From positions 232,120 to 296,119 of the IMG/VR virus record IMGVR_UViG_3300035698_035366: DNA of 64,000 nt; one strand, written 5' to 3'. Every line of letters begins with the position of its first letter. The stretch's first letter is position 1. Position numbers and translations under genes: made by a program. Below the pieces are notes generated by a model. The model did no database searches and was not told the origin of the DNA. It saw only the letters and a list, made by a program, of their open reading frames with translations. Below are positions 4,534 through 46,928 of this stretch, one piece after another.

Positions 4534-4545
4534 CTAAATACTTAT

Positions 4546-4959
4546 ATGGTACAAGAAAATCAATTTTTAGAAACTACTGGCGAGCGTGAAATTTTACATG
4601 ATACTGTTCACGCAATCGAATTTGAATTACGGTCTGAAAAGGCTATAATTATTCGAGCAGCAATTACAACCGATGAAGAGGCTCAAGCTTATTCATTGAG
4701 GATGTGGATTTCTCGACAACCATTCTCTACATCTATTCCTGACGTTTATTCAAGCGTTAATATTATTGGTGTTTATCATGTACCTACGATCCTCCCGATC
4801 AAAGCAAAAGACGCTAAAATGTCGGTTGAAGGATATCATATTATCGAGCCAGCCGGAACGCTTTATGTAAACTTGCATAATCGCTCTGGGGCGAATGGAG
4901 CGTATGTTATTGATATCACTGAATTAGATAAGGACATATGTTTTAATCCTGATGAATAG
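4546..4959 (+). CDS. Hypothetical protein (late, leaderless)
   Basis: TAAATA at 4535 followed 5 nt later by ATG. Confidence 0.6.
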   Translation: MVQENQFLETTGEREILHDTVHAIEFELRSEKAIIIRAAITTDEEAQAYSLRMWISRQPFSTSIPDVYSSVNIIGVYHVPTILPIKAKDAKMSVEGYHIIEPAGTLYVNLHNRSGANGAYVIDITELDKDICFNPDE

Positions 4960-10701: not shown

Positions 10702-11037
10702 ATGAAAAACCTTTTCCAATGGATTAATGGTCGGCAATTAGATTGTGAATATCAAAAATTTACAATCTGGTTCTTCTCCATCGGAAATTTCGGAACCGAC
10801 TGTTACATATTGCACTATCTACCAAACACAAATCTTCCGGAGCATACGGATCCAGTAAAAGGAAAGAATCATTATCGTTTAAATATCAACTTGTTTGGCG
10901 GTGGCGGATTTATATGTAAGAATGTAATTTTTAAATTTGGGACAATCGTTTTGTTTCGACCAGACAATGAACCACATTCAGTTATCAATAGTAATCATAA
11001 TCGTTGGATTTTAAGCATCGGATGGGTAAAGAAATGA
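10702..11037 (+). CDS. 2OG-Fe(II) oxygenase-like small protein
   Basis: HTD...H(SV)...R(WILSIGW) facial-triad pattern. Confidence 0.7.
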   Translation: MKNLFQWINGRQLDCEYQKFTIWFFSIGNFGTDCYILHYLPNTNLPEHTDPVKGKNHYRLNINLFGGGGFICKNVIFKFGTIVLFRPDNEPHSVINSNHNRWILSIGWVKK

Positions 11038-11289
11038 ATCACCGTAAAGCAATTAGATCGCATGTATTGAAAAAGCTGTCAACTCGAATTGATGTTCATG
11101 ATGGAACGACTGTTATCACTGAACTAAAAAGGCAAATCCGTGAGGGCGAAGCAATCAAGTTGCGTAAATCAGATTTTCTAAAGAAACGTCATAGCAAATG
11201 GCGATGTTTTTATGATAACAACAACGTCGTTGTTGTATTCGACGAGTTACATTCAACTATTATGACTGTATATCTTTAAGGAATATATT

Positions 11290-11751
11290 ATGGGACGCCG
11301 TAGGAAACGTCGGGAACGAGCATACGATTCCCAGGAAAAGGTGACGCCAATCATCGTTGAATATTGGGGTAACTACCCAGTTGGCGGAAGTGGATTGAGT
11401 ACATCTATCCAAATCACATTACAAGGTATGGCTCTACGAATTGTTGACTTAGAAGAAGAGATCGATGTTAGCTTGTCAATCATTCCTGGATATCACAATG
11501 AAGATAACGAAGTCGGGTATGGTGAAATATTAGCATCTCTACCATATACAATCGAGATTACCAAACATAACTGGAACGGCTTCAAAGACTCGAATTATAA
11601 GCTAAACTTCTCCATTAAGTTGAAGGATTTCGAAACCCTTAAAACATTAATGGAATGGTATGATGACAATGTACCAGAGTTTACCGGCATTGATGAAATT
11701 AATATGGATTTTTCTAGTCGAAGGGTGCAAGCTATTGACCTTCTAGTATAA
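11290..11751 (+). CDS. Hypothetical protein
   Basis: 153-aa ORF with RBS aagga. Confidence 0.6.
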   Translation: MGRRRKRRERAYDSQEKVTPIIVEYWGNYPVGGSGLSTSIQITLQGMALRIVDLEEEIDVSLSIIPGYHNEDNEVGYGEILASLPYTIEITKHNWNGFKDSNYKLNFSIKLKDFETLKTLMEWYDDNVPEFTGIDEINMDFSSRRVQAIDLLV

Positions 11752-12048
11752 ATAAACTTAACAGGAGTACAGAGAGCGGAACCTTCCCAGAAGATTCCAA
11801 AGAATTATATTTTAGCAGATGTTTATCTGTGCATGTAGCAAAAGCGAAGCTAGTAAACAAAAAAGTTTGCTAAAATATATAGTAGTTACAACAACCTAGA
11901 AAAAGGATTGTGGATTTTTCCAATTTTTTTCAAAATAAAGGTTGACGTAACTACGAACCCACTGTATACTCCTAAAACTAAGCAAAGGAAACGATGCTTG
12001 GTGGGATTAACCTCCCAAAATTATTTTCAACTTTTTTAAAAAAAGGAG

Positions 12049-12077
12049 TTGACAATAGATCGAAGTTAGTGTAGTAT
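12049..12077 (+). promoter_or_regulatory. Sigma70-type promoter for the leader/tRNA array
   Basis: TTGACA-N17-TAGTAT; a second TTGACG-N17-TATACT at 11942-11970. Confidence 0.8.
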
Positions 12078-12146
12078 ATAAAAACATTAACAAGCGTTAA
12101 CGGGCAATGGTGCCCAAGCAATTTTAAGGACTTAGGACAAACGAAA

Positions 12147-12368
12147 ATGTTTATCGAGACCAGACATATACAGACAGCGATTGCAAATGGCGTAAGCCAT
12201 ATTGTCGAGCTGTTGACTGGTGGGCTAGAAACATTATCACCTTGGTCAAACGGTGGAATCGGCTCAATGCAACTGGTCCAAATATGTGAAGATGATACAC
12301 GACCAGTAAAGAACCCTGAATATCGTTTTATTAATATTAAGGGTGGAGGTTCAAGTATGTTGCGGTAA
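12147..12368 (+). CDS. Putative attenuator leader peptide of the tRNA array
   Basis: 73 aa, all 20 amino acids, 41 distinct sense codons; last codons form the 5' strand of an antiterminator. Confidence 0.65.
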   Translation: MFIETRHIQTAIANGVSHIVELLTGGLETLSPWSNGGIGSMQLVQICEDDTRPVKNPEYRFINIKGGGSSMLR

Positions 12369-12437
12369 AGAGCACATACATAGCGCACACGGCGCAAATT
12401 GAACCTTCCAAGCAAAACGGCTTAGGAAGGTTTTTTT
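12344..12437 (+). terminator. Intrinsic terminator with overlapping antiterminator (attenuator)
   Basis: Terminator aaccttcc-aagc/gctt-a-ggaaggtt + T7 (12402-12437); tggaggttcaa (12344-12354) pairs with ttgaacct(t)cca (12399-12410). Confidence 0.8.
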
Positions 12438-14650: not shown

Positions 14651-14764
14651 TTCAACAATTTGCATTACAGTCCACAGCGTTCAAGAGCTTAGGCATTAGG
14701 TGGCTACTGTGGTTGAACCCGTTCAAATCGGGTTAAGAGACTCTTGATAATGCAAAGATTTTAT

Positions 14765-14840
14765 GGACCATGACTCAGCAAGGAACGAGACCTGCTTTAC
14801 ATGCAGGATTTGCGGGGAGCGTTACCTCGATGGTCCACCA
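14765..14840 (+). tRNA. tRNA-Val(TAC), non-canonical T-loop
   Basis: cctgc-ttTACat-gcagg; T-loop agcgtta; CCA. Confidence 0.82.
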
Positions 14841-14845
14841 AATTA

Positions 14846-14982
14846 TGAGGTAGTTGGCTAGGTTGGCGGTTCGACTCCGTCGTTCCTGATGGTCAGGTGT
14901 GGTTCGAGTCCACGTTAAATTAAGCGGAAAACAAATAGGGTAGCACCCGCCTATTAAGGTTCAACTCCTTAATACCTCACCA
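14846..14982 (+). ncRNA. tRNA-like RNA with three T-arm hairpins
   Basis: tgaggta/tacctca-CCA acceptor enclosing ggttcgactcc, ggttcgagtcc and ggttcaactcc hairpins; no anticodon arm. Confidence 0.6.
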
Positions 14983-15418: not shown

Positions 15419-15494
15419 GGACCGGTAGCTCAGAGGCAGTAGCGACGGGCTCTTAACCCGTAGGTCGAGATTTCGAAATTCTCCCGGTTCACCA
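15419..15494 (+). tRNA. tRNA-Lys(CTT)
   Basis: acggg-ctCTTaa-cccgt; CCA. Confidence 0.9.
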
Positions 15495-27662: not shown

Positions 27663-28526
27663 ATGACAGGATACACAACAAGAATTGCACCAAGCCCAAC
27701 GGGTGATATGCACCTGGGGACCGCTCGCACGGCTTATTTCAATTGGCTGATGGCTCGAGCATCAGGTGGTAAATTCATTCTTCGTATTGATGATACTGAT
27801 CTCGCAAGGAACGATCAGAAACATATTGATATTATTCTAGAGACAATGGAGTGGCTTGGGTTAACTTATGATGAGCTAGAATATCAGAGCAAACGTATCG
27901 ATGTGTATTATCGAGCAACAAATGATCTTGTCAAAAAGGGATTTACGACTACATTAGAGAATGGTGCAATTGCTGTTAATCTATCTTCTGTGATTGATTT
28001 CCCAACCACATGGCGCGATGAGATTTCAGGTGATATTAATATCACATCAACCAACCACGATCAAACAGATGGTATGATTCTTATTAAAGGAAATGGATAT
28101 CCGGGTTACAATTGGGCTTCGGTGGTTGATGATGTTGATCTTGGTGTAGATTATATTATTCGAGGCCATGATCATATCACAAACACTTCAAGCCAAGCAA
28201 TTCTTTATAAGTTACTAGATAAGCCATTGCCCAAATTTGCGCATGTTGGTTTAATTCACGCCAATAAAAAGAAAATGTCCAAGCGTGATGGTGCTGCGAG
28301 TATGATGCAGTATAAAGCCGATGGGTATGATCCAGACGCATTGTTGAATTTTATGCTTCGTCTTGGATGGGGGCCAACTATCGACGATAAAACGACTAAG
28401 ACTATTGACAAGGATCGTGCATTAGAGTTGTTTATTAATGGTGGACGAATGCGATCCGCCCCATCAAATTTAGATACAGCAATGCTAAATTCATATGATA
28501 GAAAATATAAGGCTAGAAAGAAATAA
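27663..28526 (+). CDS. Minimal glutamyl-tRNA synthetase-like protein (catalytic domain only; GluQ-RS-like)
   Basis: RIAPSPTGDMHLGTARTA, LRIDDTD, IRGHDH, KMSKR; 287 aa, no Zn-cysteine cluster, no anticodon-binding domain. Confidence 0.88.
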   Translation: MTGYTTRIAPSPTGDMHLGTARTAYFNWLMARASGGKFILRIDDTDLARNDQKHIDIILETMEWLGLTYDELEYQSKRIDVYYRATNDLVKKGFTTTLENGAIAVNLSSVIDFPTTWRDEISGDINITSTNHDQTDGMILIKGNGYPGYNWASVVDDVDLGVDYIIRGHDHITNTSSQAILYKLLDKPLPKFAHVGLIHANKKKMSKRDGAASMMQYKADGYDPDALLNFMLRLGWGPTIDDKTTKTIDKDRALELFINGGRMRSAPSNLDTAMLNSYDRKYKARKK

Positions 28527-29409: not shown

Positions 29410-30519
29410 ATGCGTATTGGAGAAATCGTAACGGTAGTTGTTTTTGTGTTTTTCATGTGTATCTCATATGGAGCAAACGCAACTGTAATCGGACAGAGCG
29501 AAGGCTTGTCTTTTATCAAAGCCGCCAATAACGCTCGCAGCGGGACGACAATGGATTTCCGCCAGCTTCAGAATTTTTTTAGCCCGACACAGGGAAACGA
29601 TAACCAGATTTTGAGCCGCACCGAAGCTCTTCTGGCGGAACTTGATGACGATGACAGCATCAAGCGGATATCGGTGATCGCAACCTTAATGCTTGAATCA
29701 GGAAAGGTTTATGAAGCCAACATTACAAACGGCTATCAGCTTTCCGTTGATAGCACGGGTTGGGATTTTGGTCCCAACGGTTCGCCTGTTCATAAGGATT
29801 TCCGTAAAGTAACTGAACATGATGTGGTATCTAGCGGATACGCTGTAAGCGATAACGATCTCGTTGACGGTCTTTCTGGAGTTCGAAATTTCTCAGATCG
29901 CGCAATCAACGGTGTTTATACTGTAACAGTCGTGTTTACTGGTCGGGATACGAAATTCGATACATTTGAAATTAATGGGTCTAACGTGATCGTTCGAAAC
30001 GTTAGTGAGATATCTAACCGTTTGGATATGACGAAACCAGGAGATGAGAAACTGCACAAGTCAATTGCAATTCGAACTTGGACAGTTGTAACTGAAAATC
30101 AGCTTAATGTTGCTTTCCCGAAGTTTCCTGAAAATTCCGTATTGTCGGCAATCATTATTACTCCAGTCAACATGCTACAGGTAATTGACCGTCGAGTTGA
30201 GGATTTGATCGACTCTCGCAAGCCGTTCGTGTACAATGCTGGTGGGTTTGGATCACGTAATGGATTTGATTATGGCATATCCCGATATTTTGCATACTCT
30301 AAGGATGGGTTCATCTCTACCCGAGGCCATGGTGGTTGCTGTAGTATCCCAGGCGATGATGGGCCATACGACGTACCGGTGTTTGTTCCTGGCGGAGACG
30401 GTGACCCAACCGATGTTCCAGGTATTACCATTCCAGGTACCGTTCCGGAACCCGGTGCGCTTGCACTATTCGGAATCGGCATTATTGGATTATTAATTAC
30501 TCGTCGTAGGAAAAAATAA
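29410..30519 (+). CDS. Secreted PEP-CTERM protein
   Basis: N-terminal signal peptide; C-terminal VPEPGALALFGIGIIGLLITRRRKK. Confidence 0.9.
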   Translation: MRIGEIVTVVVFVFFMCISYGANATVIGQSEGLSFIKAANNARSGTTMDFRQLQNFFSPTQGNDNQILSRTEALLAELDDDDSIKRISVIATLMLESGKVYEANITNGYQLSVDSTGWDFGPNGSPVHKDFRKVTEHDVVSSGYAVSDNDLVDGLSGVRNFSDRAINGVYTVTVVFTGRDTKFDTFEINGSNVIVRNVSEISNRLDMTKPGDEKLHKSIAIRTWTVVTENQLNVAFPKFPENSVLSAIIITPVNMLQVIDRRVEDLIDSRKPFVYNAGGFGSRNGFDYGISRYFAYSKDGFISTRGHGGCCSIPGDDGPYDVPVFVPGGDGDPTDVPGITIPGTVPEPGALALFGIGIIGLLITRRRKK

Positions 30520-31204: not shown

Positions 31205-31290
31205 GGATCATGCAGCATAATCGGCAGGCTGGGCCGCCAAGGGACTTTTAACCCCTCGCTTAAAAGGTTCGATTCCTTCTTGATCCTCCA
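31205..31290 (+). tRNA. tRNA-Lys(TTT) with expanded D region
   Basis: aggga-ctTTTaa-cccct; ggatca/tgatcc; CCA. Confidence 0.68.
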
Positions 31291-31301
31291 GATTAAATTC
31301 T

Positions 31302-31384
31302 GGACGGGTGACCCGAGTGGCGATGGGCCTGGACTCTTAATCCAGTATTATACACCGTGGGTTCGAATCCCACCTCGTCCACCA
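31302..31384 (+). tRNA. tRNA-Lys(CTT) on a class-II-like body
   Basis: ctgga-ctCTTaa-tccag; long variable loop; CCA. Confidence 0.8.
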
Positions 31385-31394
31385 GATATGTTAT

Positions 31395-31517
31395 GGACCG
31401 GTAGCTCAGAGGCAGAGCAGCGGGCTTTGGTAGAAAGGGTTTCAAGCCCATTAGAGTGCAAATCTCAAATCTACAAACCTAATCCGCGTGTCGAGATTTC
31501 GAAATTCTCCCGGTCTA
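31395..31517 (+). tRNA. tRNA-Lys-like gene with a 51-nt insertion (intron?) in the anticodon loop
   Basis: Flanks nearly identical to tRNA-Lys 15419; loop 31425-31482 is 58 nt; removing 31429-31479 gives ctTTTaa. Confidence 0.7.
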
Positions 31518-31924
31518 CTAAATTTATATTGAATTCTGCTTAATTAAAAATCGTCGTTGTATCGTGGATCGAGTCTTCTGTTGATTTCATTCATTAAGCG
31601 ATGCTCTAATTCATTTGCATCATTTAGACCAAATCTTGGTTTATCAATGAAGTTCTGTTGTAATTTTTCGATTGCATCCGAATTTTTCTCAATCTGTCTT
31701 CGATCTGTACTCGCACTTGTAACCAACGATTCCGTTCTTAATGATTCAGATCGAACTGTTTCGTCGATCGAATGTAACAAAGAATAAACGGTTTGAAATG
31801 CCCAACCAGCGGCGCTTATTCCTGCAATAATGATTGCTATAGAAATCTTGTTTAATATTTTACCAATTTCAGGTTGACTTTATCAATAAACTTAGTTATA
31901 ATCTAGAAATTGGTGTATAGAAAT

Positions 31925-46125: not shown

Positions 46126-46815
46126 TTAATATTTCCAATTATTAATTCTGTCAAGCAATACACTATACGACATATTACTATTATCATTTTTTCTTTTATT
46201 ATCTAAATGAATCATTAATTTGCAATTGGCAGGATGTGCAAGATTTTTTGGATTGTAATCGTTTTTAAATCCTTCCGAAATTGATATTATATGATCACGT
46301 GAAACCCCATTGATATTTTTAGGAAGGTTACTTCTCTTTTGTCCTGGACAAGTATACCATCCATGTTTTTCAATTAATGATAAATTGAAATAATCAGGGA
46401 AATCGAAAACATTAAATTTAAAACGTGATAACTCGTAATATTTTTCTTTTTCTGTTTTAATATAAGGAGACTGTTGTCTCCTGCCACCGCCTGGTCCAAT
46501 GGAACAATATATCTTTCCAGTAATATCGCATTTAATAAAATCGACTTTTCTAAACGGAAAAATTGTTTTTTCTGGGCCACTTTTTAATCGGGGTATTAAA
46601 TTTGTAACTGTAGCCGAGCACGAATGAGAACAATATTTATTTCTTCTTTTTTCATATACCAGTGGTATATTACAATTATTACAAAATTTTGGTTTAGTAT
46701 TATATTTTTCTACACGTGATAATTTTAATTGATTGTTTCGATGTGTTATTTGACAAGACAGGGAACAAAATTTTGGATTTTTTGTCAATTCGTTACAATT
46801 AAGGCACTTTTTCAT
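46126..46815 (-). mobile_element. HNH-type homing endonuclease with N-terminal Cys motifs
   Basis: CLNC..KFCSLSC and CNNC..KYCSHSC; SRDHIISI...HPANC..M.H..N..K; antisense insertion within the tRNA region. Confidence 0.8.
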
Positions 46816-46848
46816 TTGCTTTTCCATGGTCGTTGTGTTATTATAAAC

Positions 46849-46928
46849 TATAAATAATGGAGCGGGACAGCCCCTCTCCATGGTGGGTTTTTGTTGTTAG
46901 AGCAACAAATTACCGCCAATATTATTTA
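46849..46928. promoter_or_regulatory. Structured leader of the HNH gene (motif shared with the GIY-YIG gene)
   Basis: tataaata..gcgggacagccc-ctctccatggt-gggt..ttgttg/caacaa-attaccgc..tattta. Confidence 0.7.

Follow-up and report, generated by a model that had tools for sequence, protein, structure and literature searches.

Introduction

The closest precedent for the element described here is the group of "enigmatic" introns reported in the tRNA genes of Lak megaphages (Devoto et al. 2019, Nat Microbiol, PMC6784885), which are short, are not group I introns, interrupt the anticodon loop, are missed by tRNA finders set for bacteria and have no known mechanism of removal. Table S6 of that work shows four introns of 79-114 nt, inserted after position 36 or 37 in Tyr, Phe, Thr and Gly genes, and its authors noted that one of them may encode a tRNA. 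By our reading of the table, each starts with a small hairpin and an A/T-rich linker, followed by a nested tRNA-like domain with a full 7-8 bp acceptor stem and a canonical GTTCGAATC T arm, which ends 1-2 nt before the 3' exon. Our literature searches for phage tRNA introns returned only this paper, with no follow-up on how such introns work. Otherwise, the textbook view is that bacterial-type tRNA introns are self-splicing group I introns, found in the anticodon loops of tRNA-Leu(UAA), tRNA-fMet, tRNA-Ile and tRNA-Arg, and that protein-spliced tRNA introns, cut at a bulge-helix-bulge (BHB) motif by EndA/TSEN and joined by RtcB or Trl1, belong to archaea and eukaryotes.

Here we examine a lysine tRNA gene of a huge phage, at positions 31395-31517 of a 64,000-nt stretch of DNA (hereafter the window), whose anticodon loop is split by a folded 51-nt insert. 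The window is the last 64 kb of the 296-kb IMG/VR record IMGVR_UViG_3300035698_035366, which was cut from a 363-kb contig of a salt-lake metagenome. A preliminary description made from the sequence alone had proposed an interrupted tRNA-Lys(UUU) gene with a structured insert. That observation is confirmed in full, while its interpretation is partly supported.

Results

Structure of the interrupted gene

All features lie on the plus strand. The 5' exon (31395-31428) comprises the acceptor 5' strand, the D arm, the 5' strand of the 5-bp anticodon stem (31420-31424) and loop positions C32 U33 U34 U35 (31425-31428). The insert occupies 31429-31479, between anticodon positions 35 and 36. The 3' exon (31480-31517) carries U36 A37 A38, the 3' strand of the anticodon stem (31483-31487), the T arm, the acceptor 3' strand and the discriminator A73 (31517), after which CTA stands in the place of CCA. 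The anticodon loop is thus 58 nt long, and removal of the insert would give CTTTTAA. In the minimum-free-energy fold all four cloverleaf stems form, including a 7-bp acceptor stem, and the insert folds as a three-way junction in which helix P1 (gtaga, 31430-31434, with tctac, 31470-31474) encloses hairpin 2 (gggt-ttcaa-gccc, 31437-31449) and hairpin 3 (gag-TGCAAAT-ctc, 31454-31466, loop 31457-31463), followed by a single-stranded tail (aaacc, 31475-31479). The folding energy is not better than that of shuffled sequence (z = -1.5 and -0.9), so the case for structure rests on covariation and not on energy.

Default ARAGORN and the Rfam tRNA model RF00005 do not detect the gene with its 58-nt loop, and it becomes a standard tRNA only once the insert is removed. 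ARAGORN with introns allowed finds it with a 51-nt intron but picks the Arg(TCT) register. The second intron call made by ARAGORN in the window (tRNA-Leu, 14681-14890, 115 nt) is not an element of this kind and seems to bridge other tRNA-like sequences. Contigs of two sequencing runs span the region without a difference, and a 199-nt contig of a third run covers 31332-31530, also without a difference. The first two runs may be the source samples, but the insert is not an assembly artefact.

A family of related inserts

Scanning viral contigs for the tRNA body with an over-long anticodon arm found the same gene in another phage (contigs L009-L011, also L024, L026 and L029), with exon flanks identical to ours and a 49-nt insert that differs in sequence but has the same helices. 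That phage also carries an interrupted tRNA-Asn. The relative with Lys2 and AsnA (listed below) comes from bog-lake samples. Further pattern scans and two covariance models (R1 and R2) raised the count to nine distinct inserts of 35-62 nt, four in tRNA-Lys and five in tRNA-Asn genes: Lys1 (this window), Lys2 (contig L009), Lys3 (contig L076, 526-591), Lys4 (L245), AsnA (L052), AsnB (L076, 665-725), AsnC (L074, from a 350-kb record), AsnD (L081, from a 359-kb record) and AsnE (L226, from a 453-kb contig). All nine lie in tRNA arrays of phage contigs. The preliminary description had taken an insert unique to this assembly as the outcome that would overturn it, and this clearly fails, since homologous inserts occur in at least eight other sequence variants from other phages and sites.

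Exact-word scans for the insert found nothing beyond the same contig, and most hits of the looser patterns were chance matches in coding DNA. A resemblance between the insert and a stretch in contigs L004, L007 and L008 turned out to be an ordinary if odd tRNA and not a homologue. A similar pattern scan of one genome for each of 185,579 prokaryote species gave 79 hits, about the number expected by chance, none of which the model placed in a tRNA gene. The insert is single-copy in its genome, and model R2 finds copies only in tRNA anticodon loops in five phage records, so it is not a repeated palindromic (MITE- or REP-like) DNA element.

Conserved design and covariation

Every member splits a loop C32-U33-N34-U35|U36-A37-A38. 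The insert begins with GG, so that the 5' junction is always U|GG. The first G (31429 here) is unpaired and is a G in all nine variants, and the second opens P1, of 4-6 bp, with an invariant G-C pair. A variable middle follows, either hairpin 2, which is present in Lys1-4 and AsnC and absent in AsnA, AsnB and AsnE, or a linker of 9-10 nt. In eight of nine variants there is then a hairpin of 3-6 bp with the T-loop-like loop UGCAANU, in place of which AsnD has a different small hairpin. After 0-3 bases comes the P1 return strand and then the tail, which is 5 nt and starts with AA in eight of nine variants and is 2-3 nt in Lys4.

As MAFFT misaligned P1, the structure-aware alignment was obtained through a two-step covariance model. 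On the nine-sequence alignment, 99.2% of 123 cells form standard pairs and 11 of 15 pairs change on both sides. No shuffle in 500 reached the observed percentage paired or covariation score, and sliding the partners by 1-3 columns drops pairing to 28-39%; a 6-sequence version of the analysis also contributes to this evidence. In P1, 100% of cells pair and 4 of 5 pairs change on both sides, and in hairpin 3, 4 of 5 pairs covary. The alignments were fitted to the model's structure, which inflates pair counts somewhat, but the margin is nevertheless large.

Identity of the tRNA

Three registers are possible for this gene taken alone. Across the family, only the cut between positions 35 and 36 gives one identity per body type, namely UUU for all four bodies with discriminator A73 and GUU for all five with G73, the latter having acceptor stems that also look like bacterial tRNA-Asn. 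A cut one base earlier would turn near-identical bodies into Arg or Lys, and into Thr, Ile or Asn. The His reading that ARAGORN gives for AsnC and AsnD would need G-1 and C73, which are absent. Spliced forms best match uninterrupted Lys or Asn genes, and the spliced Lys1 body is 93% identical to an uninterrupted tRNA-Lys(CUU) in another phage contig (L005) and 86% identical to the tRNA-Lys(CUU) at 15419-15491 of the window. The Lys(UUU) register preferred in the preliminary description is therefore the one that comparative evidence favors.

Signs of constraint and of mobility, and genomic context

Lys1 and Lys2 are 96% identical in their exons, with identical 5' exons, but only 62% in their introns, and Lys2 and Lys3 differ by compensatory changes in the D and T stems that keep the cloverleaf. 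A dead gene would not behave like this. AsnA and AsnB show the opposite, with 55% identity in the exons and 74% in the introns. The intron seems to have moved between unrelated tRNA-Asn genes, or to have been swapped in along with the anticodon arm. Together these patterns suggest a functional tRNA carrying a mobile intron.

AAA makes up 65% of lysine codons in 127 long ORFs of this phage, and the 34 standard tRNAs of the record include two tRNA-Lys(CUU) but no standard tRNA-Lys(UUU). A caveat is a degenerate tRNA-like element with the loop CUUUUAA just upstream (31205-31292), which scores far below threshold; with it, the window holds a cluster of three odd Lys-type genes at 31205-31517. In this record and in the fragments G002 and G003, the interrupted genes are the only standard-looking source of Lys(UUU), but several relatives carry uninterrupted Lys(UUU) and Asn copies beside the interrupted ones, so the interrupted copies are not always needed for decoding.

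The preliminary description had suggested looking for RtcB, an RNA ligase or a splicing endonuclease. In five phage records there is no match to tRNA_int_endo (PF01974) or to RtcB (PF01139), and nothing above cut-off for Tpt1 (PF01885). ATP-dependent RNA ligases are present. An Rnl1-like and an Rnl2-like ligase, a PNK-like kinase and a Thg1-like protein are among the roughly 22 proteins shared by the three large intron-bearing phage records, all of which have a gp23-type capsid, that is, they are T4-like. The phage's Rnl1-like gene lies at G000 11076-12383, the Rnl2-like gene at 190473-191132 and the PNK-like gene at 196846-197382. T4-like phages commonly carry RNA ligases, so their presence is not specific. 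A search for a shared splicing enzyme among intron-bearing phages found none, the phages share few proteins, and no neighboring or co-occurring nuclease was identified as a candidate. The one gene found next to an interrupted tRNA in another phage (L009, 10882-11721) encodes an HNH-like protein of unknown function (phrog_23051), more likely a homing endonuclease. Gene content is of bacterial type, with a permuted tmRNA in relatives and a PEP-CTERM protein.

Discussion

Comparison with described systems

The element resembles the Lak introns as a non-group-I insert in the anticodon loop of a huge-phage tRNA gene (relatives lie in contigs of 350, 359 and 453 kb) and, in principle only, in holding a tRNA-like top half. 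It differs from them in its size of 35-62 nt, its site always at 35|36, its occurrence only in Lys(UUU) and Asn(GUU) genes, the absence of a 5' hairpin and linker, a P1 of only 4-6 bp and the UGCAANU loop. No sequence similarity to the Lak introns was seen, and the phages are T4-like lake phages and not Lak phages. What is new is therefore this particular family, while unexplained short introns in huge-phage tRNA genes were already known.

Group I introns of bacterial tRNA genes share the anticodon-loop location and a 5' exon ending in U, but they are 200 nt or longer, have a conserved P3-P8 catalytic core, a guide sequence pairing to the 5' exon and a terminal omega-G, and splice themselves; the insert here is too small and has neither such a core nor a terminal G. 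Archaeal and eukaryal tRNA introns are likewise small, lie in or near the anticodon loop and leave the exon halves held together by the tRNA body, but here there is no BHB motif, the position is different, the phage records have no endonuclease or RtcB homologue and the surroundings are of bacterial type. The T4 tRNA repair system, in which Pnkp and Rnl1 heal and seal tRNA-Lys cleaved by PrrC, involves a phage of the same broad lineage with similar ligases and kinase, and the same tRNA and loop. T4, however, repairs damage done by the host to a host tRNA, whereas here the break would be a programmed step in making the phage's own tRNA, and any link between these ligases and the intron remains hypothetical. 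In tRNA-like punctuation and scaffold processing (mascRNA, mitochondrial tRNA punctuation, MHV68 tRNA-miRNA), a tRNA-like fold directs RNase P or RNase Z to release a neighboring RNA. Those systems cut at the ends of a tRNA-like unit in a linear transcript, and none nests the unit inside another tRNA's anticodon loop or needs re-ligation.

Proposed mechanism

We favor the view that the locus is a functional tRNA-Lys(UUU) gene of a T4-like huge phage, interrupted by a member of a small family of structured, probably mobile mini-introns. The analysis establishes that the family exists as nine variants in Lys(UUU) and Asn(GUU) genes only, that its insertion site is fixed, that its design from the U|GG junction to the UAA after the tail is conserved, that both helices covary and that the exons stay under tRNA-type constraint. 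That the insert is cut out and the halves are joined to restore CUUUUAA, and by which enzymes, is inferred from sequence alone. We consider a spliced intron of a working tRNA about as likely as not.

In this view, P1 stacked on hairpin 3 would imitate the acceptor/T-arm half of a tRNA. UGCAA fits the U-N-N-R-A pattern of T-loops, and the same loop stands at the T-loop position of a paralogue of the tmRNA acceptor piece in contig L071. Counting along the 3' strand from the loop to the base opposite the first intron G gives 11-12 nt in the eight members that have the hairpin, compared with 12 in a tRNA, and the intron ends 4 nt later (1 nt in Lys4), like a tRNA 3' end with or without a CCA-length tail. 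The U|G junction matches the -1/+1 preference of bacterial RNase P. Cellular tRNA end-processing enzymes may therefore make the cuts, RNase P at the 5' junction and an RNase Z-like or other endonuclease at the 3' junction, leaving 3'-OH and 5'-phosphate ends that the phage's own ATP-dependent Rnl1-like and Rnl2-like ligases could seal. This enzyme assignment is the weakest step and we regard it as doubtful. AsnD lacks the UGCAANU hairpin, which hence cannot be essential for every member; a 3' cut 5 nt after P1 is not where RNase Z normally cuts (after the discriminator), and we know of no enzyme that makes that cut; and U35 can pair with the second tail base, which might shift an RNase P cut.

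Alternative explanations

The preliminary description had offered a protein-spliced intron, a cleavage-activated pro-tRNA or a nuclease decoy, and the present evidence does not decide between the three. Its judgments that the insert is structured with a T-arm-like hairpin, and too small to be a group I or II intron, are supported; the insert is also too poor in conserved bases. The main rival, less likely in our view but live, is that the insert is never removed and the 123-nt RNA is a tRNA-shaped decoy or inhibitor, which would keep the body and the U36-A-A-U-C element that anticodon-arm nucleases read without being used or cut productively, and so soak up host defence nucleases aimed at tRNA-Lys and tRNA-Asn. 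The family is confined to two of the three tRNAs cut by the PARIS effector AriB, which reads UAAU next to its cut site and which phage T5 escapes with variant tRNAs (PMC12409363), and all nine variants keep TAATC. The intact copies in relatives and the cluster of odd Lys-type genes fit as well, and conservation of the exons and loop halves would be expected for a decoy too. A precursor that binds such nucleases but is not cut, or a pro-tRNA hidden from them, fits these facts as well. However, a decoy does not explain why the loop halves always add up to exactly seven bases with the cognate anticodon, nor the conserved U|GG junction and fixed tail length, which look like processing signals, and it sits less well with the interrupted genes being the only standard-looking Lys(UUU) source in some records. 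It is also possible, though unlikely, that the tRNA is mainly a processing scaffold for a small stable T-loop RNA, with or without re-joining of the tRNA. The greater similarity of the AsnA and AsnB introns than of their tRNAs, the conserved loop and the tRNA-like domain of Lak introns speak for this, while the absence of the hairpin in AsnD, the free drift of intron sequence outside the loop, the lack of a known target or partner and the stronger constraint on the Lys exons speak against it.

A dead pseudogene produced by a selfish DNA insertion or an assembly error would account for the rejection by default tRNA finders and the CTA at the 3' end, but is largely ruled out by the identical contigs of three runs, the presence of a single copy of the insert in the genome, the finding of model copies only inside tRNA genes and the conserved exons beside introns with compensatory changes. 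A self-splicing or self-cleaving RNA is similarly improbable. The 5' exon ends in U and a three-way junction is a common ribozyme topology, but 35-62 nt is far below any group I core, the last intron base is C in this gene and C, G, A, T or U across variants, so there is no omega-G, and only about five intron bases are invariant outside the hairpin-3 loop. An Rfam scan of 31280-31560 up to E = 10 gave no match to an intron, a ribozyme (hammerhead, twister, pistol, hatchet and HDV considered) or another Rfam family, and the junction strands AA, AUUA and AAA do not fit the hammerhead core. Least likely is a BHB intron, in spite of the size range and location. Folds of seven variants and inspection show 5 unpaired bases 5' of P1 and 8 bases 3' of it, so that no two 3-nt bulges separated by a conserved 4-bp helix can be drawn around the junctions, and the site is 35|36 and not 37|38. 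By inspection, tail-to-5'-exon guide pairing, a pistol core and a kink-turn are not conserved across the variants either.

Implications

The finding matters for annotation, as standard tRNA finders miss these genes or give them the wrong amino acid. It also offers a compact and well-defined case, only 35-62 nt long, with a fixed insertion site, two helices supported by covariation and nine natural variants including one that lacks the T-loop hairpin. A more speculative reading, which we hold only tentatively, is that bacteria and their phages have an undescribed protein- or RNase P-dependent tRNA splicing pathway, in which a mobile mini-intron shaped like the top half of a tRNA is cut out by ordinary end-processing enzymes and phage Rnl-type ligases re-join the halves. 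Restriction to tRNA-Lys(UUU) and tRNA-Asn(GUU), which defence nucleases target, would then reflect an arms race, the pro-tRNA being invisible to the nuclease until it is needed. If the intron is spliced, it adds a third route of tRNA splicing; if it is not, it is a new kind of tRNA-shaped RNA aimed at the tRNAs that defence nucleases attack.

tRNA genes and tRNA-like elements near the interrupted gene

The interrupted tRNA-Lys gene (window 31395-31517, plus strand) is preceded by two further unusual genes of Lys type, so that three of them lie in a row. Directly upstream of the two Lys genes, a degenerate tRNA-like element at window 31205-31292 (plus strand) has an acceptor-like stem, a good T arm (GGTTCGATTCC) and a loop CTTTTAA, but carries extra bases between the D arm and the anticodon arm. 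It is found by ARAGORN only at a lowered threshold, and its best Rfam score is 16.7 bits (tRNA-Sec). The middle gene, at window 31302-31384 (plus strand), lies 10 nt upstream of the interrupted gene and is an 83-nt tRNA with anticodon CTT (Lys) but with an 11-nt variable loop and a long D loop; it scores 49 bits in Rfam. Elsewhere in the window, the doubtful tRNA-Leu with a 115-nt intron called by ARAGORN (14681-14890) contains what looks like an unconventional tRNA at 14766-14842 (plus strand), with the acceptor GGACCAT/ATGGTCC followed by ACCA, a loop TTTACAT (anticodon TAC, Val) and an odd T loop. This sequence is missed by both tools at default settings.

A tRNA-related element was also seen in contig L071, at about 1850-1882 on the minus strand, where a paralogue of the tmRNA acceptor piece (T arm, acceptor 3′ strand and CCA) lies 300 nt upstream of a real permuted tmRNA. 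The T loop of this paralogue reads UGCAAAU instead of UUCGACU, and it is preceded by a perfect sigma-70-type promoter.

Protein genes, decoding and host

A protein of unknown function (phrog_23051) with CxxC motifs and a weak HNH-like C-terminus is encoded at window 46126-46881 (minus strand) and at 10882-11721 (minus strand) of L009, a contig of another phage with an interrupted tRNA-Lys, the two copies being 32% identical. In L009 it lies 240 nt from the interrupted tRNA-Lys, while in the window it lies next to tRNA-Gly, and it may be a free-standing homing endonuclease of tRNA arrays. The 287-aa protein encoded at window 27663-28526 (plus strand) consists only of the class I Glu/Gln-tRNA synthetase catalytic domain (PF00749, E = 5e-62), which is the size and layout of a glutamyl-queuosine tRNA-Asp synthetase. 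Outside the window, the parent record of the same phage (G000:C1) carries an RNA repair and tRNA toolkit composed of an Rnl1-like ligase (11076-12383), an Rnl2-like ligase (190473-191132), a PNK-like P-loop kinase (196846-197382), a Thg1-like 3′-5′ polymerase (180570-181385) and a macro domain protein (214800-215243). All of these are shared with the 350-kb and 359-kb phages that also have interrupted tRNAs.

The relatives L009, L026, G001 and G004 each carry two tRNAs with anticodon CTA (amber suppressors), which suggests that they read TAG as an amino acid. The phage to which the window belongs has no such tRNA, and its long ORFs are open under the standard code. As to the host, a 369-aa protein encoded at window 29410-30519 (plus strand) ends in a PEP-CTERM sorting motif (E = 1e-6), which hints at a Gram-negative bacterium with an exosortase system.

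Variety of anticodon-loop inserts and apparent reuse of the tRNA scaffold

Inserts of other designs were found in further viral contigs. Three tRNA-like genes, at 212539-212670 of G001:C1, at 1211-1330 of L042 (minus strand) and at 1402-1571 of L261 (minus strand), carry larger inserts of a different design (37-93 nt). L261 comes from the same phage type as AsnE, the interrupted tRNA-Asn of contig L226, and has a 93-nt insert in a tRNA-Tyr-like gene, the same length as the Tyr intron of the Lak megaphages. Two further tRNAs on the same body scaffold as the interrupted gene, in L131 (minus strand, about 4536-4616 of the reverse complement) and in L132 (6237-6312), carry simpler hairpin inserts of 25-30 nt at other loop positions. 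One of these inserts appears to lie at 33|34, while the other could be read as Lys(CTT) or as Asn(GTT). Short inserts in phage anticodon loops are more varied than the family at 35|36. In the salt-lake sequencing runs (X1-X4), many contigs share the D and T arms of the tRNA at window 31395-31517 but carry different anticodon arms (Lys CTT, Asn GTT, Trp CCA and others), and one tRNA scaffold seems to be reused with swapped anticodon arms.
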